Notes: generated from the letters alone by a model not told the origin. A DNA stretch of 64,000 bases from Adineta vaga (GCA_021613535.1 CP075497.1:1240001-1304000), one strand, 5' to 3'; shown: positions 1-63,526, numbered from the stretch's first letter. Numbers and translations are program-made.

Positions 1-2498
1 GAAGTGATCAATTCTTAAGTATCACACAATTAAATGATGGCACGTATCTTGCTGCAGGTAAGGATAATCTGCTATACACACGGGCCACTTCGACAAACAG
101 ATGGACAGCAGTCCAAAATAGTGGAAACAGTATAGGAGCAATCCAGCTTAATGATGGCACGTTTCTCGGTGTTGGTACGGATAATATGCTGTATACAGCC
201 GGTACTCCAGCAAGCACGTGGGTCATAGTAGCTAATAGTGGTTCAATCATTGATGTTTCTCAGCGAAGTGATGGCACTATTATAGGTTTGCGTACGAATA
301 ACGTCATGTACACGCGTAATAGTGTAACCAGTGACTGGGTGATAGCCCCAAGAAGCGATATGTTTCTGAGTGTCTGTCAATTGAACGATGGCACATTTCT
401 TGCTAGTGGCACCGATCGTATGCTCTATACACGCAATTCATCCACAAACCGATGGACTGCAGTGCCAAACAGCAGCCCGAGTATTGTAGTCACACAGCTC
501 AATGATGGCACGTTTCTTGGTGTTGGCACAGATAATTTGCTATACACACGTGCCAGTTTGACAAGCCCTTGGGTTATTGTACCGAACAGCAGCCCCACCG
601 TCGATGTTTCTCAACGAAGTGATGGCACTTTTCTCGGTGTGGGAACAGATAATTTACTCTACATTGGTTCTACTTTAACGGGTGGCTCGATCACAGTTCC
701 AAGAACTGATCTATTTCTCAGTATTAACCAATTAAAAGATGGCACGTTTCTTGGTGTCGGCATAGATAAAATGCTCTACACGCGCGCCACTTCGACGGAC
801 AGATGGATAATGGTACCGAACAGCGGCACGAGCATTGTAGTGGCTCAACTGAATGACGGCACGTTTCTAGGTGTTGGTGCTGATAATTTGCTATATACAC
901 GCGCCAGTTTGACAAGTCCATGGGTCATGGTACCGAACAGCGGCCCGACTATTGATGTTTCTCAACGAAGTGACGGCATTTTGCTCGGCGTGGGTACAGA
1001 TAACTTGCTTTATACACGTACTACTCCAACGAGCAACTGGGTGATAGTGTCGAGAACCGATGTCTTTATCAGCATTAACCAATTAAAAGATGGCACGTTT
1101 CTTGGTGTCGGCAGGGATAGAATGCTCTACACCCGCACCAATTCGACCGACAGATGGATAATGGTACCGAACAGCGGCACGAGCATTGTAGTGGCTCAAC
1201 TGAATGACGACACGTTTCTAGGTGTTGGTGCTGATAATTTGCTATATACACGCGCCAGTTTGACAAGTCCATGGGTCATGGTACCGAACAGCGGCCCGAC
1301 TATTGATGTTTCTCAACGAAGTGACGGCATTTTGCTCGGCGTGGGTACAGATAACTTGCTTTATACACGTACTACTCCAACGAGCAACTGGGTGATAGTG
1401 TCGAGAACCGATGTCTTTATCAGCATTAACCAATTAAAAGATGGCACGTTTCTTGGTGTCGGCAGGGATAGAATGCTCTACACCCGCACCACTCCGACCG
1501 ACAGATGGATAATGGTACCGAACAGCGGCACGAGCATTGTAGTGGCTCAACTGAATGACGGCACGTTTCTAGGTGTTGGTGCTGATAATTTGCTATATAC
1601 ACGCGCCAGTTTGACAAGTCCATGGGTCATGGTACCGAACAGCGGCCCGACTATTGATGTTTCTCAACGAAGTGACGGCATTTTGCTCGGCGTGGGTACA
1701 GATAACTTGCTTTATACACGTACTACTCCAACGAGCAACTGGGTGATAGTGTCGAGAACCGATGTCTTTATCAGCATTAACCAATTAAAAGATGGCACGT
1801 TTCTTGGTCTCGGCATAGATAAAATGCTCTACATGCGCGCCACTTCGACCGACAGATGGATAATGGTACCGAACAGTGGCACAAGTATTGCAGTGACCCA
1901 GCTTAATAACGGCACGTTTCTTGGTGTTGGCACGGATAATATGATGTACACACGTACCACTTTGGGAAGTCCATGGATTATGGTACCCGATAGCGGTCCT
2001 ATGATCGATATTTCTGAACGAAACGATAGTACGTTGCTGGGCGTCGGCATAGACAACTTAGTCTACATTCGCACTACCTTAAGCAGTAGCTGGGTGTTGA
2101 TACCAAGAACAGATCTCTTCAGCAGCATCTGCCAATTAACAGATGGGAGGTTGCTTGCAGCTGGCATAGATCAAATGTTGTACACACGTTCTAGTTTGGC
2201 GAAAAATTGGGTGATGACGCCAAATAACAATTCTATCATTGGTGTATCTCAGCTGATCGATGGAAGAATATTGGTTGTGGGATCGGATTACGTCCTTTAT
2301 ACACTTGCTAGTTTGAATAGCAGTCGAGTGTCGTTGGGCAGTAGCAGTTTTGCTATTGCAACTACACAGCTGAAAGATGGTACAGTTCTGGTGATCGACA
2401 AGAATAATACGCTCTACGCATGGACCAGTTTTGATAGTGAATGGATTCTAATTCCGAACGGAGATGGGATGATTGGTGTGGCGGCTCTGTTATCTTAA
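1..2498 (+). CDS. Tandem 39-aa repeat beta-propeller protein (tectonin/tachylectin-like), 5'-truncated by the window edge
   Basis: The frame is open from position 3 (SDQFLSITQLNDGTYL...), upstream of the annotated Met at 186. About 21 repeats of consensus QLxDGTFLGVGTDNxLYTRxxxxxxWxxVPNS; no introns; stop at 2496-2498. Confidence 0.7.
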   Translation, partial: SDQFLSITQLNDGTYLAAGKDNLLYTRATSTNRWTAVQNSGNSIGAIQLNDGTFLGVGTDNMLYTAGTPASTWVIVANSGSIIDVSQRSDGTIIGLRTNNVMYTRNSVTSDWVIAPRSDMFLSVCQLNDGTFLASGTDRMLYTRNSSTNRWTAVPNSSPSIVVTQLNDGTFLGVGTDNLLYTRASLTSPWVIVPNSSPTVDVSQRSDGTFLGVGTDNLLYIGSTLTGGSITVPRTDLFLSINQLKDGTFLGVGIDKMLYTRATSTDRWIMVPNSGTSIVVAQLNDGTFLGVGADNLLYTRASLTSPWVMVPNSGPTIDVSQRSDGILLGVGTDNLLYTRTTPTSNWVIVSRTDVFISINQLKDGTFLGVGRDRMLYTRTNSTDRWIMVPNSGTSIVVAQLNDDTFLGVGADNLLYTRASLTSPWVMVPNSGPTIDVSQRSDGILLGVGTDNLLYTRTTPTSNWVIVSRTDVFISINQLKDGTFLGVGRDRMLYTRTTPTDRWIMVPNSGTSIVVAQLNDGTFLGVGADNLLYTRASLTSPWVMVPNSGPTIDVSQRSDGILLGVGTDNLLYTRTTPTSNWVIVSRTDVFISINQLKDGTFLGLGIDKMLYMRATSTDRWIMVPNSGTSIAVTQLNNGTFLGVGTDNMMYTRTTLGSPWIMVPDSGPMIDISERNDSTLLGVGIDNLVYIRTTLSSSWVLIPRTDLFSSICQLTDGRLLAAGIDQMLYTRSSLAKNWVMTPNNNSIIGVSQLIDGRILVVGSDYVLYTLASLNSSRVSLGSSSFAIATTQLKDGTVLVIDKNNTLYAWTSFDSEWILIPNGDGMIGVAALLS
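716..1880 (+). repeat. Intragenic near-identical 351-bp (3 x 39 aa) tandem repeat, about 3.3 copies
   Basis: attaaccaattaaaagatggcacgtttcttgg recurs every 351 bp; the antisense shadow ORFs repeat at 724, 1075 and 1426. Confidence 0.95.
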
Positions 2499-5430: not shown

Positions 5431-8400
5431 ATGATTTATGGGTACATTGTTCTTGGACTACTCTTTAACTTTGTCAAAGTCCTCGAAAGCACTCATTTTC
5501 TCGGTGGCAGTATCACATGGCGTGTACTCAATACGTCCGCCATCGGAACACCCGTCGCCATTGTCATTACTCAGACATATTCTTGGACTTGGTCGTATGC
5601 CAAATGCAACTCTACGCAAATTGCCAATAGTGAACCGTTACCTATCGTTCTTACTTACAACGGTGTTAGCAATACACTCGATTGCATTATTAACTGTGGT
5701 TCTGGTTCAGTTGGCTATTCAGCGCCACCCATACTTCCTGATTGTACTGATGTGTCACCCATACAGGGTACCACTGTTGGTCAACGCTCAGATATCGTTT
5801 ATCTGCAACAGAATGATGATTTCACTGTTGCTTTTCAAGACACTGGCTGGCGTCCTTTAGCATTTAATTCTTCAGGAGATTGGTCTCTTGCTTCACGCAT
5901 CGCTGTGATACAGCGACCTGATAATGGCCTCTACAACAGTGCACCAGTAGCTACCGTAATGTCTCCGATCAATATTCCGTGTAATCAATCAACAGTTATC
6001 ACTGTACCATTGGGTGATCCTGACGGAGATACTATGAGATGTCGATGGGCAAGTGGTTATAGTGAATGTGGTGGTGTGTGTCCACCCAGTTCGCTGCCAC
6101 CAAATACAATTATCTTCTCGAATTGTACGATTGTGATAACAGGTGAGAACATCAACGATTGGTTTGCTGTGGCACTCATGGTTAGTTTGTCTCTATGTAG
6201 AAAAAAAGTAGTGTTACTCTTCCTATTACAGGTTGAAGATTTTATCAATTCATCGAGTACCACTCCGCTCAGTTCTGTACCTGTTCAATTTCTTGTGCGC
6301 GTAGTTTCTCCACCTTCGTGTACAATTCGACCTGATATCATCGGATTGCCTGCTGAACAATCATGTACAGTAGTCAAAGTTGGTGACAGCTTTATTTCGC
6401 AGTTAATTGCAATTAACCATTGTGGACCTAGTGTAAGAATCATCGAAATTGCAACACTGTCTTTTTCAGGCATGGTTCAGAGCGATATTATAAATCAGAG
6501 TTCGACGACCTATTATAAGAATATTACGTGGATTCCAACAGCAGCTCAGCTCGGCTACCAAGTCATGTGTGCAATGGCACTGAACAGGTGCATATACTCT
6601 CAACAATGATGATGATAATAAGGATAAAAAATATTGTTTTTGTTTACTAGTCAAAACTTTCAATCGGCACAATATTGCTTTACATTCTATGTATCGGAAA
6701 ATGGCGCCGATGATTGTCCCAGCGATGTTCTTCTTACAACAAGCACAACGTAAAAAAATGTCGATGTCAAATCTTCGTATATCTTTTGTTTGTAAGGACC
6801 AGCACAACAACTTCATTGACAAACGATACAACGCATACAATAATAACAAGCATAACATCGTATGTATACTCAAAATTTTCGTATCTTATATGCTTTATAT
6901 CATGTATTTTATAGAGAAATAACAAGTGATACAAGGTGAACACAAGAATGAATAGGTTTCATTGATTTTAAAATAGGATTACCCTAATAATTCTACGAAA
7001 TACACATTGTGAAAAAAAATCATAGATCTTTTCTCGAGGGTGAACATAAAAAAACACTAATACAGATCTCTTAATGAATTGTAATCACTATTAAACTCGC
7101 CTTCTCTCCCATGTTGTTCTTATTATCGGTAAGTCAGGAATCGGACGATAGAAGAAGTGGGGATCTTTTTTAATAATGTTATTCATCGAATAGTATATAT
7201 GAAAGTAATAAATTCTTTTGAGGTCTATTACTTGTAACATATTTTTCCAGTACTTGTATGTGTTCTTCATCTATCATAGAAATTATGTATTTTATTTGTA
7301 ACTCTAGTTTCACAACAAACAATAGTTCGGCAACGTAAGGCAAATCTTCAATCAGAATATATTTCTGTTTTTCATTCGCAGATCAACAACATTGACGAAA
7401 ACAACAAGCATACCACACAAAGGTATGTTGTTTGTTTTTATCTATAGAATCGTAAGACATTGCCTCGTTTAATATCAGTCGATTTCATCAATTGGCCTCT
7501 GTTCGGCAGTCTTATTGGTTTAGCTCTGTTGGGAACAACTGTTCTATGTTGCTGTCTGTGTTGGAACTTTTGTCGGTCTGTTCATTGTTTATAATAGTCT
7601 TGCCATTGCCTATTTTGTTGTTGTTATAGTTCACCTAATCGTCGGAGAAAGCATAAGCGTGATCGAACGTTGGACAACTATTGTTTTGAGCGACGTACAG
7701 ATTCAGACAATCAATGGTCATATACGCCAACAAATTTACTTTCTGACTCATTAAAAAACTACTTCTTCGACAATATTTCGAATGAGCGCACAAACAATTC
7801 TGCAGACAGTCAAAGAACATCATTAACTGAAATTACTAATGGACCATCAGATTTGAAAGAGAACAGTAAAGATTTGGGCTCAATGGGCTTTCATCGAACT
7901 AGTTTTCTTTCAACGAACAACAAAACATCAATTTCGAAAGAAACAGTAAATACAGGGATACACACTACAACAAGTGCTGACATCAAATCGCTCTACCGAA
8001 AGTCGAAAGAAAATAAACTTCTGTCTGCCAGCAAGCGAAAAAGTATTGAAAATGTGACGGTAACTCGAGTTAAACTGTCTACAAAACAAAGATCCTTGAG
8101 TAACAATGCCAAGGCAGAATCGGAACAGCATCTGACAACACGTGTCAACAAGCAGACTTGCTCAAGTCGAGCAAACACCGAAGCGACAAATGTTGTTCGC
8201 ATTATTCGTGTACCTTCTCATCCGTCTACGAAGTGTCGTTCATCAATTGCCGAAAACACCATTCGATTAGATGATATTGATAAAATACAACAAACACTTT
8301 CGACGCTGAAAACTGCGAAAGACTTGTCATTAGCTGACACACGATCACAAGAGACGATGATTGATAACACTACTAAAACATTACCGACAGGGATTCATAT

Positions 8401-8437
8401 TGATCGGATGCGAACGTTCAAGATAAAGCGTTTCTAG
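5431..8437 (+). CDS. Multi-exon type-I membrane protein: signal peptide, Cys-rich ectodomain starting HFLGGSITW (Sib/'integrin beta-like' type), Ser/Thr stalk, TM, low-complexity cytoplasmic tail
   Basis: ATG at 5431; introns 6181-6231 and 6588-6650 plus further short introns around Thr-rich microexons; TM exon 7479-7575 (WPLFGSLIGLALLGTTVLCCCLCW) splices in frame at 7630 into ORF 7670-8437 via basic RRRKHKR. Confidence 0.7.
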
Positions 8438-9395
8438 AATTTGTTGAAGAAGACACAGAAGAATACGTATCACACTTGAACGAATATCAAAAGAAACAGT
8501 AGTAAAAAGATAGTATCCAATATTTATATGTTCTGAACACTACTTCTCCTTTAATAAATTCTTTGATCTTTTCTTTTGACCAGAATTTCAATTGTATGTA
8601 TGGAAATTCGAAACATTTTCATTCATATTTTTCTACATGAATTTTCTCGAATCTTCTATTTGATTACGAATAAATCAAATCCAAGTTCACTTGGTTTGAT
8701 TGTTTAAACTCTGATTATCTCTTAAGATTAACATCAATGTCAGATAATAAAATATTCTTAAAATTGATCAACACAAGTTGGTGGAAAAAAAAGAAATATG
8801 ACAAACATGTTTCTCGAATATTCTCTAAATATATTATCATTTTCAAAATATTTTAATTGAAAACACATTGATCGTATAAGAGCAAAAATCTATTCCTAAT
8901 CGAACATCTTGTCAACCGATAATTGAGATCTTGTATGATATGATATTTCCATCTAGGATTCAAAATAATAACAAATATTTGAACATTAAATAAAACTGAA
9001 AATTACAAGAAACCGTTAAATATAATAAAATATTAAAATATGAGAATAATCTTTTCTAATTCACATTTTAAATCATTTTCATCATATATTCTAACAATAC
9101 AGATGATTACTAATCAACGAATCTTTTATACATTGATTAATATATAAGGATTTGTTTGTATACATTTACTGTCTTTATGTTTATTCTTTGTTCTTATTGT
9201 TTCATATCAATGACTGGATACTTATTAGTATATTGCACTGAAGTAAAATGTACTATGTGTACATCTAAACGATTTCACATCCCACATCTGTTTTGATTTC
9301 GAAATTATAGTAAAATACTAAGTATATTGTACTGAGTCAACATCCATCATACAATTAGCTAAGTATATAAGAAGTATTTGTACTAGAACTTGTAC

Positions 9396-41092: not shown

Positions 41093-42152
41093 TTAATGAC
41101 TTTGTACATTTCTTTGTACTAGTTTTTGAAACAAATGACGATACAAAATAATTATTCTTTCATAAAATATATTTCGAAAGAATTTACTTGAAATAATTGA
41201 TACGAAGAAAGATAAAGCATAATTGACAAAATATAAAGAACCACCCAATGTTTCAGCAAACACTACTGCAGCACGATGAGCAACTGTTGGAGTAATAATA
41301 TTAAAGACAATATTACGATAAGTAAAAGAACCAAAACGTAAGAGAGAAAGTAATATACTTAGAAAAACTTGTATTAAAATGATCTATAATTTAAAAAAAT
41401 TTACATGAATTGATTTATTTATTGATAAGAAATATTAATAAAATCGTACCTTTAGAAGTTTAATTTCGAATGTTTTTCGACGATTTGATGTACGATTTTC
41501 TGTTATTGCAGGAAATACACGTTGTTGTGATTGTTTAAAAGTATTTATAGTCATAAGAGAAAAGATTAACATAAGAATATGAGGTAAAAATATGACAACA
41601 ATAATTGTATAAGATACATTAATATATATATATATAAATACTTGAAGGTTGAATTTGACACAGATTATTATAAATATTATAAAAGATAAGAATATGTATT
41701 GGTATTGTAATAGAAAGTATTAACATAAGAGTTGATATTCGTTTTGCAATTTTAATTTGACTTCGTGCACGTACTTTGGCATTATGTGATATACAAAAAT
41801 ATCGATCAAGTATAGATAAAAATATGTAATAAGAACAAATTGTAGGTAATGTCAATGCAAAATAATAACGAAATTTACAAAATAAAGATGATTCATTTAA
41901 TAAATTACTTCCAGAACGATCATAAAACAAACGAAATAAAACACATATTAAAATAGTTATTAATTCAGATATTGTTGCACATAATAAATAGAATACAGCT
42001 GAAGACTGACGTATTTGTCGATTAGTAAATGTTATTAAATTACCAATACAACCAATTATACCAAAAATGAAAGTAATAAGATCGATACTTAATGTAATGT
42101 TAGAGAGAATTTGGGATAATGTAGTTGAATAGAGAGCCACTATTGAGGACAT
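41093..42152 (-). CDS. Orphan class A GPCR with a frameshift inside a (TA)n tract
   Basis: GCIGN, LDRY; the ORF stops at 41619 but TM5-7 continue in another frame; intron 41384-41449; last exon 41383-41093. Confidence 0.7.
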
Positions 42153-42969: not shown

Positions 42970-45900
42970 TTACACCCACGGTATGATTTCACCTCCATCG
43001 GTAGAAGAATTGGTCATCAACATTCCTCTATAGTATATTGTAGCATTAAATGTTGCGACTGCATAAATTTCATTGGTAGCACAAACATAGACCACTGCTC
43101 CATCTGTAGCTGTTACGTTAACAGTCGACGAGCATCTTGATGGATCTGTCAAAACCATCGCATTGTTAGCATCAATCGAGATATTCACATTTGCGCAAAC
43201 ATTGAAAAATTTGCTACTATCACTGACAGTTATATTGAGTTCTTTAGGGCACACTTGCGTAGAATCGTATACGAATGATGAATTAATACCATAAATGTTC
43301 ATCGAATTCACAGCACAAAAAGATACTGACTCATTAACATTGGTAGCAGTTACAGTTGTTGTTCCAGGACATGGCCAAGAAGTATTGGCGGTAACAATAG
43401 CTAAGTCATAAATATCGATATTCAGCTCAACACTAGCACATAGATTCGAAATACGAGCTCGATCAAAGGCAACAGCATACGTAGTCTGTGGACATACAAC
43501 AGAAGAATTAACAACAATATCGGATAAATTAGTTATATACATCTGAAGTTCATTATACGCACATACACCGGCTATGGACGTATTGCTCGAACTATTGACG
43601 GATGCGTATTGTGGACATGGCCAAGTCTGATTAATTGAAACATTCGCCCCGTCCGTCATCTGAATATTCAACTGAGCCATAGCACACAGATTTGAAATCG
43701 TTGCACTTTCTGAAACTGTCACACTTGTATTCTGTGGGCATATAACCGTTGTATCAACAATAAGTTTGGATAAATTGCTAGCAGTCAACTGCAATATCTT
43801 TTGTGCACAAATGTCAGAAATTGGAATGGTATTAGAACTAGTAACTGTTACGTTTTGTGGACATGGCCACGTATGATTAATTGACACGTTCGCCATATTT
43901 TGAGCTCGAATAGTTAATTGTGAAGTAGCACATATATTTGGAATAATAGCACTTGCTGATGCCATAATAATTGCAACCGCTGGACATATCGCCGATGAAT
44001 CGACAATGAGACTAGATGAATCGCTAGCAGTCAAATGAAGTGTATTCTGTGAGCAAATGTTAAATATTGGAATGATAGTAGAACTAGTAATTGTTGTGTC
44101 GTGTGGACATGAAGACGCTTGATTGATAGAAACATTCGCCATATTTGCAGCTTGAATAGTTAGTACTGTTGAAGCACATACTTCAGGTATAATAGTAGTA
44201 TCAAATGCTACAATATGTGCTGTTTCCGGACATATATTACTAGAACTAACGAAGAGACTAGAAGAACCACTACCAGTCAATTGCAGATTATTTTGTGCAC
44301 ATATATGAGCAATTGAAATATTACTTGAGCTCGTGACAATAGTATTCTGTGGACATGGCCATGTATAATTAATTGAAATATTTGCTGTATTTGCAGCTTC
44401 AATACTTAACTGTCTTGTAGCACAGATGTTTGAAATCGATGCATTTTGTGAAGCTTTGACAATTGTATTTTGTGGACATAACATAGATGAATTCACAACA
44501 AGATTAGCTGAGCTACTACCAGTTAACTGTACTGTATTATTTGCGCATATGTGAGCAATTGGGACTGTAGAAGAACTAGTAATTATGGTGTATTGAGCGC
44601 ACGGCCAATTTGGATTAATTGAAACATTAGCCGAATTTGCAGCGTCGATACTTAATTGAATCGTACTACAAAGGTTTTCAATCACCGTACTTTGTGCGGC
44701 TATAACACTTGCATTGTGAGAACATGTAACATTCGAATTGACGATCAAATTAGATGAGTTGCTAGCAGTCAACTGTAAGATTTCTTGTGCACAAATATGA
44801 GCAATTGGAAAAGAACTCGAACTAGTGATTGTTGTGTATTGCGGGCATGGCCATGTCTGATCAATTGACACATTTGCATTGTGTGCAGCTTGAATGGTTA
44901 GTCGAGAGATCGCACAAACATTTGGTATCAAAGCACTGTCCAAGGCGTTAACAGTCGTTGTCTGCGGACATACGATAGTTGAATCAACAGTAAGATTTGC
45001 GGTTGCGTTCCCAGTTAACTGTAATGTATTGTTTGCACATATATGAGCGATAGGAACATTACTAGAACTTGTGATGGTTGTATTCTGTGGACAAGGCCAT
45101 GTCTCATTAATAGAAACATTGGATGTATTAGTAGCTTGAATATTTAATTGAACTGTCGCACATAGATTAGGAATTGACGCATTTTGGGAAGCTACGGCAA
45201 TTGTGATCTGTGGACATACAACAGAAAAGTTGACAATGAGGTTGGATGAACTACTAGCAGTCAACGATAATGAATTTTGTGCACAAATATAAGCGATGGA
45301 AATATTACTAGAACTAGTGACTGTAGTATATTGTGGACATGGCCAAGTTTGGTTGATGGAAACATTCGCCGCGTTTGTAGATTGAATCGTTAGTCGAGAA
45401 ATGGCACAGAGATTTGGTATAAGCGCATTACCAGATGCGATAATAGTTGTTGTTTGTGGACATACACTAGTTGAATCGACATTAAGATTTGCGGTTGCGT
45501 TCCCAGTTAACTGTAATGTATTGTTTGCACATATATGAGCGATAGGAACATTACTAGAACTTGTGATGGTTGTATTCTGTGGACAAGGCCATGTCTCATT
45601 AATAGAAATATTGGATGTATTAGTAGCTTGAATATTTAATTGAACTGTCGCACATAGATTAGGAATTGACGCATTTTGGGAAGCTACGGCAATTGTGATC
45701 TGTGGACATACAACAGAAAAGTTGACAATGAGATTGGATGAGCCACTAGCAGATAATCGCAACGTGTTTTGGGCACATATATAAGCGATGGAAATATTAC
45801 TAGAACTAGTGACTGTAGTATATTGTGGACATGGCCAAGTTTGGTTGATGGAAACATTCGCCGCGTTTGAAGATTGAATGGTTAGTCGAGAAATGGCACA

Positions 45901-48383
45901 GAGATTCGGTATAAGTGCGGTGCCAGATGCGGCAGCAGTAGCGATCTGTGGACATAAGACAGTTGAGTCCACAGTAAGATTCGAACTTGTGCTTCCAGTT
46001 AATTGTAATGTATTGCGTGCGCAAATGTAAGCGATGGGAATATTACTAGAACTAGTGACTGTAGTATATTGTGGACATGGCCATGTTTGATTGATGGAAA
46101 CATTTGCCGCGTTTGAAGATTGAATGGTTAGTCGAGAAATGGCACAGATATTTGGTATCAGCGCATTACCAGATACAATAATGGTCGTAGTTTGTGGGCA
46201 AACGCTAGTTGAATCGACATTAAGATTTGCGGTTCCGTTCCCAGTTAACTGTAATGTATTGTTTGCACATATATAAGTGATGGGAATACTACTAGAACTT
46301 GTGATGGTTGCGTTCAGGGGACATGGCCATTTTGGGTTGATTAAAACATTCGCTGTGTTGGCAACTTGAACAGTTAATCGTGTGGTAGCACAGAGATTTG
46401 AAATCAGTGTAGTTTCGGATGCGATAACAGTGACTATTCGCGGACACGTGAGACTTGTATTGACAATGAGAGCAGACGAACCATTCGCAATCATCTGTAA
46501 TGTATTTTGTGCGCATATACGAGAGATTGGAACAGTACTGGAACTAATAATGTATGTATTTTGTGGACATGAGCATGTTTCAATCAGGGTTACATTTGCG
46601 GCATCGCGAACCTGAATGGTCAATGTCGAATAGGCGCCAACATTTAAAATTTGTGTTTCATTAGAACCAAAAACTGCAGTATTGTTAGGACAGCGTGACG
46701 ATGAATCAAAATTGATTGTTGATAAGTCATTACCGGTGACATTCAATATACTATCAGTGCAGAGATCGTTTATTTCCGTTGTACCAGAAGCCACCAAAAC
46801 TGTCGTTGTTGTACATTTGATGGATGCATTGAAATTAACGGTAGAATTACCAGTGATAGTAAGTATTAATACTTGAGAATGGCATATATTAGTAATAGGT
46901 ATACTGCTTTCATATTGAATATGAAGTATTTTTGGACACGGAGCAGTATCATTCATGGTAATTGCAGCTGAATCTGTAGTTCGAATGAACATCTGATCGA
47001 TTGCACAAATGTTAGAAATATTGCTGTGTCCGGAACCTACTGCCATAGTATTTTGTGGACAAACCCATTCTGAGTTAACGTTTACAGCAGATTGTTGTGT
47101 TGCAAATATGCTTAGTAAATTTTTAGCACATATATTTGACATCATCGCATCATTGGTTGCATTAATTACGGTTTGATTAGGGCAAATATGTGTTGAGTTC
47201 ATTGTAATGACGGCAGATTGCTCGCCATTTATATTCATTTCTTCAGTAGCACAAAGACCCAATAGTTGTACTGAATCAAAAGCATGCACAATAGTTTTTT
47301 GTGCACAGCAGATGGATGAGTCGACAGATACTTTAGATAATTGTGTACTTATTATATTCATTATTTGATTCGCTGAAATATTAAGAACTTGTGTTTGATT
47401 TGTTGTTTCAATATTTGTTGTCTTTGGACAAACACATGTTGAATTCATAGTAATTAGAGATGAATCCTTGCCTGTGATATTCATCTCAGTAATCGCACAA
47501 ATATCTAATATTTGACTGTAATCTTCTCCAATTGCAACAGTTCTCTGTGGACATACCAATGATGAATCCATAGTAACTAGAGATTGTTCTTCGGCTTCCA
47601 TACTTGCCGCAACTATGGCACAAACATTATTAATATGTGCCATATTGTGACTATGAACAGTGATTGTGTTAGCACATAATGATTGTTTCATGAAAATATC
47701 ACTATTGTTACAAGCATCAACACTTAAGTAATCATTTGAACAAAGATCATATACTGTCGCATTATTGATGGTTGTAATGTTGACTGACGGTATGTTACAT
47801 GAGTAAGTGTTTGCCATATTAATATTGTCGTCATTTTGTAAGAGCAGAGATAGAAATCGTATCGTTTCTAAAGAAAAGTTTCCTTGATCAATGCATCTGG
47901 TGAATATTTTGAATTGATAATTACCTGTTGTTGTAGCTTCAGGTATTGTTGTCGACGTTGCATCAACATATAAATCTACACAAAAAAAGAAAAAAAAAAC
48001 TTTTAATCGTATGAATATGAAAGTGAGAGCACGAGCCAGCTTATACTATTTTGAAGAATAAATCGATCTTTTTTCTACTCTTTGTTAAACTTACAATTTG
48101 TTTGTAATGATTGATTAATTAATATCAATAAAGAATCAAGGTGCAATTGAATTTTGATTGAATTATTATTTGAAGAAAATAATTGACATGTTTGATTGAC
48201 TGAAAAATAATTCAATGCACTGATTGATTCATTGAATTCGATCATATGACATATACATTGATCTCGAGTTTGATTTACGAAGAATTGATTAATATTTCCA
48301 ATGATAATTGTATTCTGTATTTGATTAAGTAGAATACAATTATTCAGAGAAAATAAATAAAAAATACAAAGTATCCATAACAT
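42970..48383 (-). CDS. Giant secreted Cys-rich beta-solenoid protein: signal peptide, PAN/apple-like domain, about 38 x 41-aa repeats, GIN/DUF2807-like C-terminal cap
   Basis: Exon 1 (MLWILCIFYL...DQCIC...LNYF...TCQLF), a microexon at about 47976-47925, then a long exon. Repeat CPQxTxVxAxxxAxIxNLCAxxxLxIxAxxxxxVxIN; internal 492-bp nucleotide duplication (45061 vs 45553). Confidence 0.75.
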
Positions 48384-53886: not shown

Positions 53887-54582
53887 TTTCTTTCTTTTTT
53901 CTAAACAGTTTATTCGAATATTTTAAAGAAATAAAGAAATCATTTTTTTATTCTTTGTCATATAAACAATCCTCTTTCTTCTTATTTTCTGCTAGATGTC
54001 ACTTTTTAACACACAAGTATTCTAATAACATCAATTATAAAAGTATCGGCGGAAAATCACAATCTGCATAAAAATGACAAGATTGATTAAAAAAATGTCT
54101 TTCATAATATTGTCAATGAATTCAACGCTTGATTAATCTTATTTGTTTTGACCATATCATATCTAATCGATATACATTCATACTATTTCATTTTTCTATT
54201 TATCAAAGGTAAGAGTAGACCCATGTTGCCTATTTTTAACGACTGTACGACATTTACATCGTAAAAAATGATAAAAACAATTCTTTTTCATTTCGGTATA
54301 ATATATCGATAATGTACTTTAATATCTGTACGACTAAATTTTGTACATTTTTAATATCAGGTCAAAATCATTGATCCGTATAGCGTAAGGACAAAATTTT
54401 ATATCTGAATATTCGTATCGATAAAATCGTGATTGATTTTCATAAAAGAATATATAATAAATTAGTATGCATATCATCATTTCTCTTCGAACTAAATGTT
54501 AAAAAATATTCAGATGAAACAATATAAAAGGAAACAAGAAGATTAATCTATTGATTTTTCATAAATTATTTTAGATAAAAAG

Positions 54583-57500
54583 ATGAGATTGGTATCTTTA
54601 CCGATTGATGATACATTTCTCTTGAATAAATTAGTTCTTCTCGGTTGGTTCTCATTAATTTTTCGACCTCGACATCAAATAACTCGTTATCTTGTTAGTT
54701 TTCCATTAATTGTCTTTACAATTCGATGTTTAATAACATTTATTCATTTATTTATTCAAGAAAAATCCAAAGAAGGTTCATTAAAATTCTCGAATTTGAT
54801 AAATATTTATTATGATGCATTTTATATTGTTGCAAGTTTAAGTCATTTTCGTGTAACTGAATTATGGTTAGGTCTTTGGATGGTTAAAGATTTTAATCGT
54901 CGATATACATGTGCATATAATGTTAAATTAAACAATGATGGAAGTATTTCAACTTATAATTATTGGTCAGAAGAAAATATTGTTTTTACAATAATTCTTA
55001 TTTTGACTTATTTTCTTTCACCAATTGGTTTAATTGTTTATTTTTTATTAACAAAAACGTATTTTTATCGATTTAGTTCTCGTCAAACAATTTATTGGAA
55101 AAATCCTCAAAATTTAAAAATAAAAAAAACTGTTTCATCAATTGATTATGAATTTTATTCAATAAGAAATATTCGTTTTGGTGATTCATTTCCATCTCAT
55201 CTACGAAAATGTTATCGATTTATTCGAGGAATAATTGGAATTCTTTGTAGTTTAATTATATTTCTATTCTATCTTTTCTATATTATTTATTGTTCAATAT
55301 TTCATCGTCAAAAATCATCAAATGATTTTGATAAAACTCTTCGATGGCCACCTTCATCTGTTCGATCACATACAGTTAAATCTTGTTGGAAATCTCTAAT
55401 AACACCTGAAGAAAAACGAAATTGGTTATGGAAATTAAAATCTTATTGGTTACAAATCTGTACTTTGATTCTATTTGGGCCAAATGGTGAAAAACCATTG
55501 AATCTTTTTCGTGCAATGCAAAATGATTTTTCATTAAATTTAAATAAAAATGATACAAATGGTTTCTTTCCATTTGGTGATGGAATTGGTGTTAGTAAAC
55601 ATAAATATGTCAAAGAATATTTAGAAAGTCGTCATCCACTTATTATAAAAGATTTTCAAACAGTTGGGTGGTCAGTTTCAAGTTCTTTAATCAAATTTTC
55701 ACAATTTATTCATATATTTTATCCTAATCAAAATGAACCCATCGCTGATCGTCATTTACTAAGTCGAAAAATTGTTCATCAATGGTTAGCATCATTTCCT
55801 CATCAATTATCAAATGAAACATTAACAGAAACATATCAACATCTATGTCATATTGTTCCTCGTCAACCAAATAATGAACCGAATAAAGATTCTATTTATT
55901 TAGCTGTTGGTGAAACAATTTTCTATTTAGCAACTGGTGGTTCATTAACACGTGATGAACGTGATGCTTATTTAGATTGTGTTAAAAATCCTTCGACATT
56001 TCTACCTGATTGGTTTAATTTTTTTATTGCAGGAAATTATTTAGAAAATAAAGGTTATGAAAGTCTTAATAAATTTCAAGGAGCATTTGCACGACATATT
56101 CACGGACCTGCTATACAAGCTGCATTTCAAGTTGCTGAAGGTCATATGTCGAAAAGTGAAGTAGTAAGATTAATTACAAGTGCTTTTTGTATGGGTGCTG
56201 CACCGGGACCAGCGAAACTTACAGCAAATATTATTCATCGATTATGGTCAGATCAATCAATGGAAATTTATTCAGAAAAAGAGAAAATGATTGATTTATT
56301 TCATGAAAATCCTCGAAATTTTATTTTAGAATCTGCTCGTATGAATTCGGTTTTACCAATGGTTAGTTTAATTTCAAATTCAAAGATTAATAATGATATT
56401 AAAACACATACTGGTTATGATATTCCATTAAATACACGAATTCATTGTTCTCTTCCTGATGCTAATCATGATCCAGAAGAATTTATTTTACCAAATGAAT
56501 TTAATCCCAAACGTTCATCTCTAGAATTTGATAAAATTATGACATGGAATGGATCAATTGGTGGAATTAATCAAGAAAATGAAGATTTAAGACCACCTCG
56601 TTATTGTCCTGGTCATCATCTATCTTTAAAAGTAATGGAATTTTTAGCTTTTAGATTTGCACCAATTGTTACTTGGAGAAAAGAAAACTTGTTATCAAAG
56701 AATGAAATCTCATCGTTTGATAATGATAATGACGAATCTGAAATAGTTATTTCAATACGTGAATTAAATACACGTTATCATTTAGATGATAAAACAAATA
56801 ATTATTATTTGTCAAGTCTTGATGGTTATACAAGATTAATAATGTTTCTATCGAAATTAGCTTTACAAGGATGGAATAAAAAACCACCACGTGCAATTGA
56901 TATTGGTGAACCATCAAATTTACCAACACAAGATCTTCATATAAAACGTGTTGATGGTGCAAGATATGTTGCATCATGGGATGAAGATGATCATAATGAT
57001 TGGCATTTTCATACAAAATTTGTGAATAAAATTTTAAATTCAAGATCTTGGCCATTAGAAGATCATGAATTACAATTTAATTCTATTGATGATATGATTG
57101 CATGGAGATGGAAACATTTTCCAACAATGCCACCAGCAAATAATCCATTTTGGTTCGGTGATAGTGATGAATTAATGAGTCATTTTGCTTTCTATGGTCT
57201 TGCTTGTCATCATACAAGAAAATTAAATTTAAATGAAGAAAATATGGAATTACATTGTGCAACATTAACACATCCTATACTTAAAATAGCTTCATATGTT
57301 AATGATATGACTGATCTTTCATTGTTTTCTGTTCGTCAACCATTTGATCGTTATGGTGCTGCTGCTTATTTTGATAATCAACGTCGTTTAATTGGTATTT
57401 ATTTATCTCATCGTAATCAATTAATAATTCCAATAAAAGATTCTCGAAGTATTGATAAAGATTGGATTTATGCTAAATATATGTGGAGATCATCAGCATT

Positions 57501-58578
57501 AGCAATGGTTACAATACGTGATCATTTATTAACAACACATTTTATTGAAGCAAATACATTAACACATATTTCAAGAGAATTTCTTCCAACAACACATCCA
57601 TTACGAACATTTCTTAAACCATTTACTTATCGTACAGTAACAATAAATTATTCGGCAGCAACATCATTAATTAATCAAGGTGGTCTTTGTCATCGTATTT
57701 GGGCTTTTGAACATGATGAATTTCTTAAACTTTGTGATTATGTTATTGCTCATTATCGTTTTCGTATTATGCCAAATTGGATTCATCGAAGTATGAAATT
57801 AGAAAATCAAAAACTTTGTTCAACTCCTTGTCAAGAAGATAAAAAATGTCCTAAATGTGGTTATAATTCAAATGATTCAAATCATGAAGAAAATTCCAAA
57901 GAATTAACTAAAGAACAATTAGAATGGATTAAATATTATCCAATTTCAGATGATTTACCTTCATATTGGAAAATTGTTCGAAATTATGTGAGAAGATTTT
58001 TTGAAATTGAATATGGAAAAGAAGATTTAGAAAATGATGATGAAATGACAACTAAAAGAATATTTATGAACGAACCATATGAACAAAGATTTATTGCTGA
58101 ATTATGTAAACCATTAGGATTAAATGGAATTCCTAATCGTGCTCGTTTAATTGATGTTTTAACACAATTAATTTGTTCTTGCACTGGAATTCATGAACAT
58201 GTTGGACATGTTGGTGATTATTTATATGATCCAAATTTTATCGGAACAAAAATACGAAGAGATTTATCATCTTTATTACCTTCTGTTCAAAATTATAGTT
58301 TAATGCTTGTTTTAACTGTTCTAACTGCGATGAAAATGCCTGGATTAATGGAAGATTGGAGTCATCTTATTCCAAGAATTGATTCGGATAATCAAATAAA
58401 TAAATTTTCATTAATTAAAAGTGAACAAGAAGTTCAATCACATCTTGATAATTATTATTTATTTAAATATCAATTAAATCAACGTTCTATTCAAATTGAT
58501 CAAAGACATCAAACATCAAATACATTTCCATTTCAATCATTTAATCCAAGATTTATGGAATGTTCTGTTTCAGTTTAA
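54583..58578 (+). CDS. Intronless 1331-aa fusion: ABA4/DUF4281-like membrane domain, CYP74-like cytochrome P450, lipoxygenase
   Basis: aa 1-160: WFSLIFRPRHQITR, HFRVTELWLGLWMVKD, LTYFLSPIGLIVY. P450: ESAR (ExxR, aa 583), ANHDPEEF..PNEFNPKR, WNG-x16-PRYCPG (heme Cys675). LOX: WIYAK, H981-x4-H986, HPLRTFLKP, TINYSA, H1204, C-terminal SVSV. Confidence 0.85.
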   Translation: MRLVSLPIDDTFLLNKLVLLGWFSLIFRPRHQITRYLVSFPLIVFTIRCLITFIHLFIQEKSKEGSLKFSNLINIYYDAFYIVASLSHFRVTELWLGLWMVKDFNRRYTCAYNVKLNNDGSISTYNYWSEENIVFTIILILTYFLSPIGLIVYFLLTKTYFYRFSSRQTIYWKNPQNLKIKKTVSSIDYEFYSIRNIRFGDSFPSHLRKCYRFIRGIIGILCSLIIFLFYLFYIIYCSIFHRQKSSNDFDKTLRWPPSSVRSHTVKSCWKSLITPEEKRNWLWKLKSYWLQICTLILFGPNGEKPLNLFRAMQNDFSLNLNKNDTNGFFPFGDGIGVSKHKYVKEYLESRHPLIIKDFQTVGWSVSSSLIKFSQFIHIFYPNQNEPIADRHLLSRKIVHQWLASFPHQLSNETLTETYQHLCHIVPRQPNNEPNKDSIYLAVGETIFYLATGGSLTRDERDAYLDCVKNPSTFLPDWFNFFIAGNYLENKGYESLNKFQGAFARHIHGPAIQAAFQVAEGHMSKSEVVRLITSAFCMGAAPGPAKLTANIIHRLWSDQSMEIYSEKEKMIDLFHENPRNFILESARMNSVLPMVSLISNSKINNDIKTHTGYDIPLNTRIHCSLPDANHDPEEFILPNEFNPKRSSLEFDKIMTWNGSIGGINQENEDLRPPRYCPGHHLSLKVMEFLAFRFAPIVTWRKENLLSKNEISSFDNDNDESEIVISIRELNTRYHLDDKTNNYYLSSLDGYTRLIMFLSKLALQGWNKKPPRAIDIGEPSNLPTQDLHIKRVDGARYVASWDEDDHNDWHFHTKFVNKILNSRSWPLEDHELQFNSIDDMIAWRWKHFPTMPPANNPFWFGDSDELMSHFAFYGLACHHTRKLNLNEENMELHCATLTHPILKIASYVNDMTDLSLFSVRQPFDRYGAAAYFDNQRRLIGIYLSHRNQLIIPIKDSRSIDKDWIYAKYMWRSSALAMVTIRDHLLTTHFIEANTLTHISREFLPTTHPLRTFLKPFTYRTVTINYSAATSLINQGGLCHRIWAFEHDEFLKLCDYVIAHYRFRIMPNWIHRSMKLENQKLCSTPCQEDKKCPKCGYNSNDSNHEENSKELTKEQLEWIKYYPISDDLPSYWKIVRNYVRRFFEIEYGKEDLENDDEMTTKRIFMNEPYEQRFIAELCKPLGLNGIPNRARLIDVLTQLICSCTGIHEHVGHVGDYLYDPNFIGTKIRRDLSSLLPSVQNYSLMLVLTVLTAMKMPGLMEDWSHLIPRIDSDNQINKFSLIKSEQEVQSHLDNYYLFKYQLNQRSIQIDQRHQTSNTFPFQSFNPRFMECSVSV

Positions 58579-58705
58579 TTGTACTTCTATTTACTTTCTT
58601 TTCTTTTCTTTTTTTTTTATCTTTTATGTAACTTGCTTATCTTAGAAATATAAAAAGAAAGATTTTATCATAAAGAGACTCAAGTTTAAATAAAGACAAG
58701 GTAAG

Positions 58706-60346
58706 ATGGATCTATTAATTGATAATATAACAAGTACAACGATACTTCCTCCAACTCAACCCTATCCCATATGGGTTGGTTATTTGTCTGTAATTATATC
58801 AGTTTTATTTTTTGGTTCAAATTTTGTTCCTGCCGCGAAGTTCCCAATTGGTGATGGAGTTTCATTCCAATTCTTTTTATGTTGTGGAATTTGGTTTACT
58901 GGTGTTATTATTAATTTAATTCTTGATAATCCACCTTTTTATCCATTAGTTATTATTGGAGGAGTTTTATGGACAACAGGGAATGTTTTATCGATGTTTG
59001 TTATACCAATAAATGGACTTGGTTTATCAATGTTATTGTGGGGTACATCGAATCTATTTATAGGTATGATTTTAAATTTTGAAGATAAAGAACACTGCAG
59101 GATAAGATCGCAAAACTGTTATCTTCTCAATATTCATACTTTATAGACTGAGGAGATAGAACATGGAATTCTGCACGTTGTTATGCATTTGTTTTGGTTT
59201 GATTGAAATGAAAAAAAAATTCTTAACAATGAAATAGTGCACGACCTTAGTAGCAGTTTTAAGTGTTGAGGATACTCTTTGTGTACCTGTAATTTTTCCA
59301 TTTTAGAACGAAATGAACATCAGAATCAACATAAAAAATGATTCCACAATATACACATCTTATTATTAAGGGGACCATAGGGGTAGTTTTATTAAGAGAA
59401 TGGCTAAGGAGAAGCACAGGGCAGGTTTTGATGGTAAAAGATTCCTAATCAGATGTAAATATATATTATGGAGTCATTTTTTATGTTGATTCTGATTATG
59501 ATGTTCATTTCAACCAATTGAGAATAAATACATAAAAAGGTGCAGAATTCCATGTTCAATCTCCTCAGTCTATAGAGTATGAATATTGAGAAGGTGAGAA
59601 ATTTGCGATCTTATCCCGCAGTATCTTTTGCTTTTTAAAACAAAGGATGGGCAAGCGGACATTTTGGCTGGTTTGGATTAAAATCTGAAGGAGTTGAAGT
59701 ACCGATATTTAATTATCTTGGTGTATCAATTGCAGTCCTTAGTGGTTTAATATTTCTTGGAATACGTAGTCAACAAAATCAATCTTTAGAAGAAGATAAT
59801 TTATCTTCTCAATTAATTAATTCAAATTCGGATGAAAAAAGTCAATTATCAAAACAAAATCGAATGCGTCTTTTAGGATGTTTATTAGCAATTATAAGTG
59901 GAGTTTTATTTGGTTTAGTTTTTACTCCTTCAACATATATTCAAGATCATCATGAGAAATATCCATTATCAACTAAAAATGGTCTTCATTATGTTTTTTC
60001 AATGTATACAGGAATTCTATTTGCATCTTTCTTTTATTTTATGATTTATATCATATTTAAAAAGAATCAACCATATATATCAATTCAAAGTATATTTCCG
60101 GCGTTTTTATCGGGAATTATGTGGGGAATTGCACAAGCTGGATTTATTCTTGCTAATAGTATTTTAAGTCAAGCTATTTCATTTCCATTAATATCAATTG
60201 GACCAGGAACACTAGCAGCACTTTGGTCAATTTTATATCTAAAAGATATTCGAGGTAAAAGAAATTATCTTATCTTTACTATTGGAACAGTCATTCGAAT
60301 TATTGCTGCTATTTTGATTATTTTATCCAAACCAATTTCAAATTAA
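58706..60346 (+). CDS. TMEM144: Transmembrane protein 144 (DMT-superfamily sugar transporter-like), 2 exons
   Basis: FFGSNFVP, GDGVSFQ, GGVLWTTGN, GWASGHFGWFG across intron 59064-59645, PAFLSGIMWGIAQ, GPG. Confidence 0.9.
59093..59623. mobile_element. MITE with long TIRs inside the TMEM144 intron
   Basis: About 85-bp imperfect TIRs (actgcaggataagatcgcaaa...gaacatggaattctgcac / gtgcagaattccatgttc...tttgcgatcttatcccgcagt) plus an internal inverted pair at about 59316-59347 / 59469-59506. Confidence 0.8.
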
Positions 60347-61926: not shown

Positions 61927-63526
61927 TTATAAAGTTTCTTCTAATTTTGAAATTTGATTAAAATTTGATCTTCGATTTAGAGAAGGATTTATTGTTGTTG
62001 GTACAAGAGATAATCTTCTTTGTTCTTGTTGAATATGATGTGAAACAGAACCGCGAACAATTGTTTGAATTTGTTGTTCAGTTAAAGGTTCACCAATAAT
62101 TGAATTTCTCCATTCATAAGCTTGTTCACCATGTTCTTCTTCATCTAAACCCATTTCTTCATCAAATGAACCTTTTAATCCAACTAATTTATCAATTAAT
62201 TTTAATAAAATAATTGTTATTATTCCTGACCATAAACCAGTTATAACAACAGCCATTGATTGAACACCAAGTAAATATGGACTATGTGTACCAAAGAATA
62301 ATCCATCACGACCATCTTCATTAAATGATTTTTGACCAAAAAATCCAATTGCTATTGAACCAACAACACCTGTTATTCCATGAACACTTGAAACATCTAA
62401 ATAAAAATAGATTTATTTCTTTTTTCTTTTTCTTTTTCTCTTTACCGAGTGCATCATCAATACGTAATTTATGTTTAATTAAAAATATACTTGAATAAGA
62501 AGTAATACCTAAAATAACTCCAAGAACCGCTCCGTATTGTGGATCAATATAACCCGAAGCAGGTGTTATACCAGCTAAACCAGCAATAACACCATTAAGA
62601 ACAGCTGTAGCTGATGGTTTATGTCTTATCCAAGATATAATTAGCCAAATAACTCCACTTGTCACAGCTGATCTTTGTGTAGCAACAACAGTTGAAACAG
62701 CTAATGAACCACTTTGTAAAGCACTACCCGCATTAAAACCAAACCATGCTGTCCATAATAAAGCGCCACCAAGTGCTGCTAATGGTAAATTTGATGGAGG
62801 AAATTCTCCATTATATTTATCGAAGTCTTTTCTTTGTCCTAAAACAATTCCACAAATTAAAGCAGAAACACCCGATGTTGTATGAATAACCATTCCACCT
62901 GCAAAATCCTTTTTTATTCGAAATTGAAAATAAATTTATTTATATATTTGACAAATATTTTACTTGAACTCCAAAATTTTTATTTAACCATCCATCTCCC
63001 CAAATCCAATGTGCAACTGGATAATAAATCAATAATTCCCAACCAATAATAAATAAAACAAATGCTTTATAACGAAGTCTTTCAGCAAATGCTCCTGTTA
63101 TTAATAAAGGTGAAATAGCTGCAAACATCATTTCAAAAAACCCAAATAAAGCTGCAGGAATATTTGGTGAATGTCTACTACAATCTGTATATGGAACATC
63201 TAACATTAATATATTATTTAAACCTCCGATAACTCCACCTACTGAATGTCCAAATACTAATGTATAACCAATTAAATGCCACATAACTGATAAAATAGAT
63301 GCACCACCAATAATTTGTGTGACTAATGAAACTGTATTGATACTTTTTAATAAACCGGCTTAAGAAGATAAAAATAGAAAGAAACAAATCTTTTGAAAAT
63401 TCAAAAATAAAAACCTTCAAAAAAAGCTAAAGCTGGCATCATTGATAAAACTAATATTGAGGAAATTAAAACCCATGTTGTATCACCTGTATTTATACAA
63501 CTAATTGTTTCATTTGGACTTAACAT
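61927..63526 (-). CDS. amt: Ammonium transporter (Amt/AmtB-type), 4 exons
   Basis: GDTTWVL, FEMMFA, GAFAER, YYPVAHWIWG, DFAGGMVIH, WFGFNAGS, GLAGITPASG, DDALDVSSVHG (both pore His present). Confidence 0.92.

Follow-up and report, generated by a model that had tools for sequence, protein, structure and literature searches.

The stretch of DNA analysed here, hereafter the window, comprises 64,000 nucleotides (nt) of the bdelloid rotifer Adineta vaga, namely positions 1,240,001-1,304,000 of contig 6 in a 100.8 Mb six-contig genome. It holds an uninterrupted, intronless open reading frame (ORF) at 54583-58578 on the plus strand, with an ATG start and 1331 codons plus a stop, which encodes an ABA4-like membrane domain, a cytochrome P450 and a lipoxygenase (LOX) in one chain. 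The ORF listing of the window reproduced exactly the coordinates, strand and start codon given in an earlier reading of the sequence alone (the original prediction). Moreover, the three domains lie in the order which that prediction proposed: Pfam detects ABA4-like, p450 (below its cut-off) and Lipoxygenase, and the P450 is confirmed by profile, model and fold searches. The base composition around the ORF is 26-29% GC, at which the per-codon stop probability is 0.083 and the chance of 1331 stop-free codons is ~1e-50. The GC content of the ORF itself (0.279) and of its third codon positions (GC3, 0.086) agrees with the AT-rich host. The ORF has a 100% database match on a 13.9 Mb chromosome, where it is flanked by spliced animal genes. 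Four co-linear contigs of an independent DNA run (X8) tile the ORF (54386-55758, 55760-57275, 57277-57593 and 57595-58561). As these contigs cover the whole ORF co-linearly, an assembly join is excluded as the source of the fusion, which disposes of the misassembly named as a concern in the original prediction. The ORF, the three folds or families, the conservation of catalytic residues and of the architecture, and the distribution of the family are all directly supported.

The P450 domain spans amino acids (aa) ~258-698 (55354-56676; this and all features of the fusion protein lie on the plus strand). As a single sequence it scores 19.2 bits against Pfam p450 (PF00067, aa 580-644), under the cut-off of 22.8. 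This reflects divergence and not absence, because a profile of the family, built from an alignment of the middle region of 23 homologs, matches 402 P450 sequences in the PDB. The best of these is CYP134A1/CypX (E 2.7e-12), with P450 BioI, CYP107B1, XplA and P450nor among the other top matches. An AlphaFold (AF2) model of aa 240-725 has a predicted local distance difference test score (pLDDT) of 85.8 and a predicted template modelling score (pTM) of 0.86. All 500 Foldseek matches counted for this model are P450s, at template modelling (TM) scores of ~0.5. VIA-align superposes ~340 residues (within model residues 19-459) at a root-mean-square deviation of 3.5 Å and Z of 24-26; all 1000 chains that it realigned are P450s, and the best 50 are bacterial-type enzymes (P450T2, CYP107/109/134, BioI, XplA). 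The middle domain is a true but very divergent P450. When it was searched alone, only six matches were returned, all of them fragments of this family; stand-alone matches are few and lie on short contigs, and neither a named stand-alone P450 relative nor the name of a CYP family came out of the search.

The residues expected of a heme-thiolate enzyme are present. The homolog alignment places a family-invariant ExxR motif at E583 and R586 (56329-56340), and a segment running from the PERF-type Arg644 to the heme ligand Cys675 (WNG...RPPRYCPG, 56512-56613). Residues E583, R586 and R644 form the ERR triad, the Cys motif is a canonical RxCxG (RYCPG), and these three residues together with R673, C675 and G677 are invariant or at least 90% conserved among 18-23 homologs. 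Further invariant or near-invariant positions are F634, F640 and P642 in the PERF-type region and N656 in WNG. The original prediction had named Cys675, an ExxR motif and His981, and in each case it was right: Cys675 in RYCPG is the heme cysteine, E583/R586 are the ExxR pair and His981 is the first LOX metal histidine.

Three further features bear on what this P450 does. The I-helix segment FCMGAAPGPAKL (aa 536-547, 56188-56223; family consensus IAGxxAPAKL), located by the alignment of homologs and by HMMER against the CYP134A1 I-helix, lacks the acid-alcohol pair, and across the family alignment neither an acidic residue nor Thr occurs at the pair position in either plausible register. The Cys loop is long, comprising the 30 residues that lie between Arg644 and Cys675. 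Searched against the PDB as a profile, the loop finds BcmD-type P450s best (9xhp at E 1e-6, 9xho at 9e-5); a weak alignment also spans the whole CYP74A loop (E 0.035), which is 5 residues shorter than that of the family, and the peroxygenase CYP152s are among the weak matches (E 0.16 or worse). Lastly, Pfam finds no reductase, flavodoxin or ferredoxin domain in the 1331-aa protein, nor any match to a catalase domain. Taken together, the missing acid-alcohol pair, the long Cys loop and the lack of a redox partner domain argue against a classical monooxygenase function.

The LOX catalytic domain occupies aa ~745-1331 (56815-58575) and extends to the last residue; no PLAT domain was detected in the 1331-aa protein. 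Pfam Lipoxygenase (PF00305) matches aa 956-1040 with 27.2 bits (cut-off 23.6), and a profile from an alignment of 20 homologs matches 55 LOX sequences in the PDB, of which human ALOX12 is the best (E 2.5e-24). Alignment with the homologs and with ALOX12 identifies the putative metal ligands as the invariant His981 and His986 in HLLTTH (57523-57540), His1204 in HEHVG (58192-58206), where the invariant Gly1208 takes the usual fifth-ligand position, and the carboxylate of the C-terminal Val1331 (58573-58575). The ALOX12 alignment reaches the very last residue, where the rotifer protein reads SVSV and ALOX12 reads SVTI, and all LOX C-termini of the family are V or I (SV/SI endings) with the single exception of a K. 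As its terminal carboxylate binds the metal, a LOX must be C-terminal and any partners N-terminal to it, and the domain order agrees with this; coral allene oxide synthase (AOS)-LOX has its LOX in the same place. The near-invariant Ala1025 aligns with the Ala/Gly stereo-determinant at the Coffa site, and oxygenation is thus probably of S stereochemistry.

Bacterial genomes were scanned with the LOX alignment. The scan returned three stand-alone LOX loci only and no P450-LOX fusion, although it rests on two peptide patterns and does not prove absence. The nearest bacterial relatives are stand-alone LOXs of 536-602 aa from Myxococcota metagenome-assembled genomes (MAGs), with 27-28% identity. 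In one Myxococcota/Deltaproteobacteria MAG a 536-aa LOX (5905-7515) precedes a patatin-like phospholipase (7467-9044) on the same strand, the two ORFs overlapping by 49 nt. This suggests a two-gene module in which release of polyunsaturated fatty acid (PUFA) is followed by its oxygenation. Another relative of the LOX (29% identity by tblastn) lies at 5670-7565 of a contig binned as Bifidobacterium breve, a bin that is doubtful, and its 631-aa ORF has no Pfam match at E 0.001.

At the N-terminus, aa 15-153 (54625-55041) form an ABA4-like/DUF4281 membrane domain of four to five helices. Against a PF14108 cut-off of 27 bits, the full protein scores 33.6 and aa 1-250 by themselves score 37.7, and the same family matches 13 of 18 homologous N-termini (best E 4e-11). 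A structure model of the region (pLDDT 78) shows bundle helices at 9-27, 32-64, 69-83, 86-107 and 130-158, after which a short hairpin and a linker lead to a long helix at 205-244 (55195-55314). This additional transmembrane helix, with its hydrophobic core at 217-235, is conserved in homologs. The strongest hydrophobic peaks of the region lie at aa 40-58, 133-151 and 217-235, the last reaching 2.83 on the Kyte-Doolittle scale. In the model the helix, situated between the ABA4-like domain and the P450, resembles a P450 membrane anchor. A feature search of the ESM Atlas with aa 1-250 gave no usable match. A kinship of the ABA4-like domain with EXPERA-type sterol isomerases was also considered, and the N-terminal fold searches lent it no support.

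An exhaustive homolog search gave 969 matches (E <=0.001), many of the family members being unnamed metagenomic proteins. Full-length homologs with 38-65% identity are found in bdelloids (Adineta ricciae, A. steineri, A. vaga, Rotaria spp. and Didymodactylos). Outside the bdelloids, all three domains lie on one Trinity transcript of Soliformovum irregulare (Amoebozoa), and P450-LOX proteins are found in Acrasis kona (Heterolobosea) and Bolivina argentea (Foraminifera), with a second and third Bolivina protein from further cluster look-ups. Among 170 fetched relatives, 60 combine a P450-like region with a LOX, and 23 of these 60 also carry the ABA4-like domain. A profile search for more named fusion proteins returned bdelloids only. 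No other animal is among the named homologs, although most matches are unnamed and absence from other animals is unproven. The database labels of the homologs read 'Lipoxygenase domain-containing protein' or 'unnamed protein product'.

The same genome contains two further intronless paralogs, at C1:15074872-15080223 (1233 aa) and C5:3723160-3728493 (1222 aa), equal in length to NCBI Adineta vaga I4U23_004988 and I4U23_022920, and all three gene copies are uninterrupted. The two paralogs are 75% identical to each other and 41-44% identical to the protein encoded in the window, and they look like a retained duplicate pair. Their ratio of nonsynonymous to synonymous substitution rates (dN/dS) is 0.33, which indicates purifying selection on the family. 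The same ratio between the window gene and either paralog (0.62-0.67) is uninformative, because the sequences are highly divergent and saturated at synonymous sites, with a GC3 of 0.09. Within this genome, the window gene is the only copy found of its own clade.

In a tree of the LOX domain the bdelloids fall into two fully supported clades. The first includes the window gene; all its named species are Adineta, and its sister (100/94) is a three-domain protein encoded on a eukaryotic contig that has 60-68% GC and carries retrotransposon genes. The second contains the C1 and C5 paralogs, Rotaria and Didymodactylos, and is sister (91/72) to Soliformovum. A single bdelloid clade was not rejected by the approximately unbiased test (p = 0.19), which leaves one versus two acquisitions undecided. 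A foreign origin is nevertheless likely, because the gene is intronless amid multi-exon animal genes and the named non-bdelloid homologs belong to amoeboid protists. Bdelloids are well known for gene acquisition (PMC11258130). Horizontal acquisition, as originally proposed, is thus plausible from gene structure and homolog distribution, with a protist-like donor suggested, whereas the LOX-domain tree does not settle donor, direction or number of events.

Evidence of expression comes from three sequencing runs (X1-X3) that are only guessed to be RNA. Runs X1 and X2 give short, low-depth, co-linear contigs over 55489-58260, and X3 gives one contig over 57715-58561, in all cases without joints. 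In X1 and X2, contigs end at 59064 and then run into unrelated sequence, a point at which DNA run X8 passes straight through. This break, absent from X8, is what spliced RNA would give in X1 and X2 at an exon boundary of the neighbouring TMEM144 transporter gene, which is split into at least two ORF pieces (58706-59146 and 59864-60346, plus strand). This bears out the intron-bearing neighbours of the original prediction. The P450 and LOX parts are likely transcribed, albeit weakly; a single transcript that includes the ABA4-like part was seen only for the Soliformovum homolog. Separately, an X8 contig (depth 103) omits 161 nt (58365-58527) in the 3′ part of the LOX coding region, where a second X8 contig and the X3 contig are intact. 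The skip may be a repeat artefact (the side is only 30 nt) or a deleted, frame-breaking allele.

On balance we favour, with some reservation, the view that the gene is functional, has a foreign ancestry and encodes a membrane-anchored, bifunctional oxylipin synthase, in which the hydroperoxide made by the LOX is rearranged by the fused P450. The PLAT-less C-terminal LOX would oxygenate a PUFA to its hydroperoxide. The adjacent P450, having neither a reductase domain nor the O2-activating acid-alcohol pair, would then take the hydroperoxide itself as substrate and rearrange it to an allene oxide, an epoxyalcohol, or a hemiacetal/aldehyde. The ABA4-like helices and the extra transmembrane helix would keep the enzyme in the membrane beside its lipid substrate. 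Such a two-step logic would be that of the coral catalase-type AOS-LOX and the fungal dioxygenase-P450 fusions (DOX-CYP), built from other parts.

The catalase-related AOS/hydroperoxide lyase (HPL)-LOX fusions of corals (Plexaura homomalla, Capnella) and cyanobacteria (Acaryochloris, Nostoc) likewise place a heme domain N-terminal to a chain-ending LOX, and combine two consecutive oxylipin steps (presumed for the rotifer protein) in one chain with no redox partner. They differ in that their heme domain is a small catalase, whereas that of the rotifer protein is a thiolate-ligated P450, and in that the rotifer LOX lacks PLAT and is accompanied by a polytopic ABA4-like membrane domain. Moreover, the PDB profile search shows no more than a distant relationship of the rotifer LOX to coral 8R-LOX (E ~1e-16). 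The fungal DOX-CYP proteins (PpoA, 7,8-LDS, 9S-DOX-AOS) also join a fatty-acid dioxygenase to a P450, one that is self-sufficient and isomerises the hydroperoxide. Their dioxygenase, however, is an N-terminal heme peroxidase/COX-like domain with the P450 C-terminal, whereas the rotifer protein has a C-terminal non-heme LOX. Bacterial and cyanobacterial mini-lipoxygenases share a PLAT-less catalytic domain of ~540-600 aa; unlike the rotifer LOX they are stand-alone, and in the PDB profile search animal LOXs are at least as close as the solved mini-LOX 5med.

The original prediction called the P450 CYP74-like, and this stands in part. In common with the CYP74 clan (plant AOS, HPL, divinyl ether synthase and epoxyalcohol synthase; animal CYP440 and CYP443), the rotifer P450 has an ERR triad, lacks both an I-helix acid-alcohol pair and a reductase domain, and is physically linked to a LOX; its Cys-ligand loop is long as well, although the lengthening may or may not be homologous. 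Its sequence and fold, however, are closer to bacterial-type P450s. The CYP74 Cys motif is of the NKQCA(G/A) type, whereas that of the rotifer P450 is a canonical RxCPG, and no conserved Asn lies in the I-helix segment as aligned across the family. CYP74 enzymes are stand-alone, and the rotifer P450 is fused to its LOX; in plants, LOX2, AOS and allene oxide cyclase (AOC) are reported to form a complex (PMC6411374). As the P450 does not belong to the CYP74 clan, the proposed role as a hydroperoxide isomerase rests on the absent motifs and on the logic of the fusion.

Several observations weigh against a bifunctional oxylipin synthase. In the PDB search with the P450 profile, CYP74A (2rch, E 3.4e-5) and CYP74A2 (E 2.5e-4) are outscored by ~35 other P450 sequences, and no CYP74 is among the best 50 VIA structural matches; guayule AOS (3dan and 3dam) takes Foldseek ranks 17 and 48 with TM scores of 0.51-0.54, no better than CYP1A. 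The P450 is thus outside the CYP74 clan by sequence or fold. The aligned I-helix segment contains no conserved Asn like the catalytic Asn of CYP74, although its register relative to CYP74 is not fixed. In the LOX, the usual fifth ligand (Asn, His or Ser, four residues after the third His) is replaced by Gly1208 throughout the family, and HMMER opens a 2-residue gap between HEHVG and the HAAINQ of ALOX12. Judged from these alignments the metal site is atypical, and this is the main doubt about LOX chemistry. The N-terminal fold searches were uninformative, with TM scores <=0.35 in the Atlas and Z <=7.5 in a wide PDB search that returned generic helical bundles only. The probable RNA support is of low depth, and none covers 54583-55488, the N-terminal ~900 nt. 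Lastly, the chemistry is inferred throughout, from substrate to product, and so is what the ABA4-like domain does.

These points leave room for other readings of the same protein. The closest sequences and structures are ordinary bacterial-type monooxygenases and the RxCxG Cys motif is canonical, so the P450 might be a conventional monooxygenase, such as an epoxygenase or hydroxylase of PUFA, that draws on a separate NADPH-P450 reductase of the rotifer and acts in parallel on the fatty acid or on the LOX product. We consider this improbable: the I-helix segment has neither the acidic residue nor the Thr anywhere in the family, the greatly lengthened Cys loop shapes the proximal face on which a redox partner docks, and the P450 domain almost never occurs apart from the LOX, its few stand-alone matches being confined to short contigs. 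Alternatively, the P450 might be a peroxygenase. The lipid hydroperoxide made by the LOX would here oxidise a second lipophilic substrate, such as a carotenoid or isoprenoid, presented by the ABA4-like domain. Retention of that domain in 23 of the 170 fetched relatives, from bdelloids to Soliformovum, would fit, as would the ties of the plant ABA4 family to carotenoid (neoxanthin) metabolism (PMC9499517) and the presence of CYP152s among the weak Cys-loop matches. Those matches, however, reach only E 0.16, P450-LOX is kept without a detectable ABA4-like domain in Acrasis, Bolivina and many metagenomic members, and nothing points to a second substrate, which makes a peroxygenase distinctly improbable.

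The invariant Gly1208 in place of Asn, His or Ser raises a different doubt, that the LOX is no dioxygenase but an eLOX3-like hydroperoxide isomerase or a lipid-binding module, and that the protein processes hydroperoxides from elsewhere. We give this very little credence. The fifth ligand of canonical LOXs is a weak one, the family conserves all three His ligands as well as the position of the terminal carboxylate, and one stand-alone bacterial relative adjoins a patatin-like phospholipase, as expected for an enzyme acting on free PUFA. That the gene is an inert relic of horizontal gene transfer, or an artefact of assembly or contamination, would accord with the thin RNA support and is otherwise effectively refuted: a frame of 1331 codons stays open in 28% GC DNA (P ~1e-50), GC and GC3 match the host, the gene has spliced animal genes on both sides of it on a chromosome of 13.9 Mb and is covered by an independent DNA run, and other Adineta species have orthologs.

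A bifunctional synthase thus remains the reading that we prefer, and it may be extended to the ABA4-like domain. This domain shares PF14108 membership with plant ABA4/DUF4281. Plant ABA4, however, is a small plastid membrane protein that stands alone and is linked to carotenoids, whereas the rotifer domain shares its chain with two enzymes of lipid oxidation, in hosts that do not photosynthesise. In plants ABA4 is needed for the formation of neoxanthin in carotenoid metabolism (PMC9499517). Because the plant family is thereby required to turn an epoxy-carotenoid into an allene, the rotifer domain might be a third working module that, within the membrane, binds or transforms what the P450 produces, an unstable epoxide or allene oxide. 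The protein would then be a three-step single-chain line for an undescribed class of oxylipin signal or defence compound, moved between amoeboid protists and bdelloids by horizontal gene transfer. We regard this reading as speculative and unlikely.

With regard to novelty, we found no description of a natural P450-LOX protein and no link between DUF4281 and lipoxygenase in the searchable full-text literature, which excludes most subscription journals, so that an earlier description is possible. There, LOX fusions were of the catalase-AOS/HPL type only and P450 fusions of the fungal DOX-CYP type only, the same two types to which known fusions were limited in the original prediction. Fusion of a heme domain to a LOX is therefore a theme already known, of which the P450 version is one without a description in that literature. 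Natural fusions of a dioxygenase with a hydroperoxide-converting heme enzyme, such as coral AOS-LOX and fungal Ppo, have been key to understanding oxylipin chemistry. If our interpretation is true, pairing a P450 with a LOX is a third, independently assembled solution, and 'class III' P450 chemistry has arisen a second time, in a P450 lineage outside the CYP74 clan and without the oxygen-activation motif. The enigmatic ABA4/DUF4281 domain would also gain a new, biochemically testable context. Moreover, these genes may be one more metabolic gene family that bdelloid rotifers acquired horizontally and keep in multiple copies, and they point to unexplored lipid signalling in amoebae and foraminifera.

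As to the surroundings of the fusion gene, TMEM144 (58706-60346) begins 128 nt past its stop codon on the same strand (gap 58579-58705), a spacing reminiscent of operon-like junctions. The window also contains an ammonium transporter gene (62321-62893) and a fragment of a rhodopsin-type G-protein-coupled receptor gene (41619-42152), both on the minus strand. A second long intronless ORF, of 1615 aa, lies at 42970-47817 on the minus strand and consists of tandem ~45-aa Cys-containing repeats rich in Ser, Thr, Asn and Ile, with a recurring ...CPQxT...ICA... pattern. A Pfam search with this ORF gave no family above cut-off; its region has raised GC (0.36-0.38) and a strong GC skew (0.16-0.22), and its product may be a secreted or mucin-like surface protein. 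Finally, the first 2000 nt of the window (1-2000) have a GC content of 0.47, against ~0.30 elsewhere in the window.

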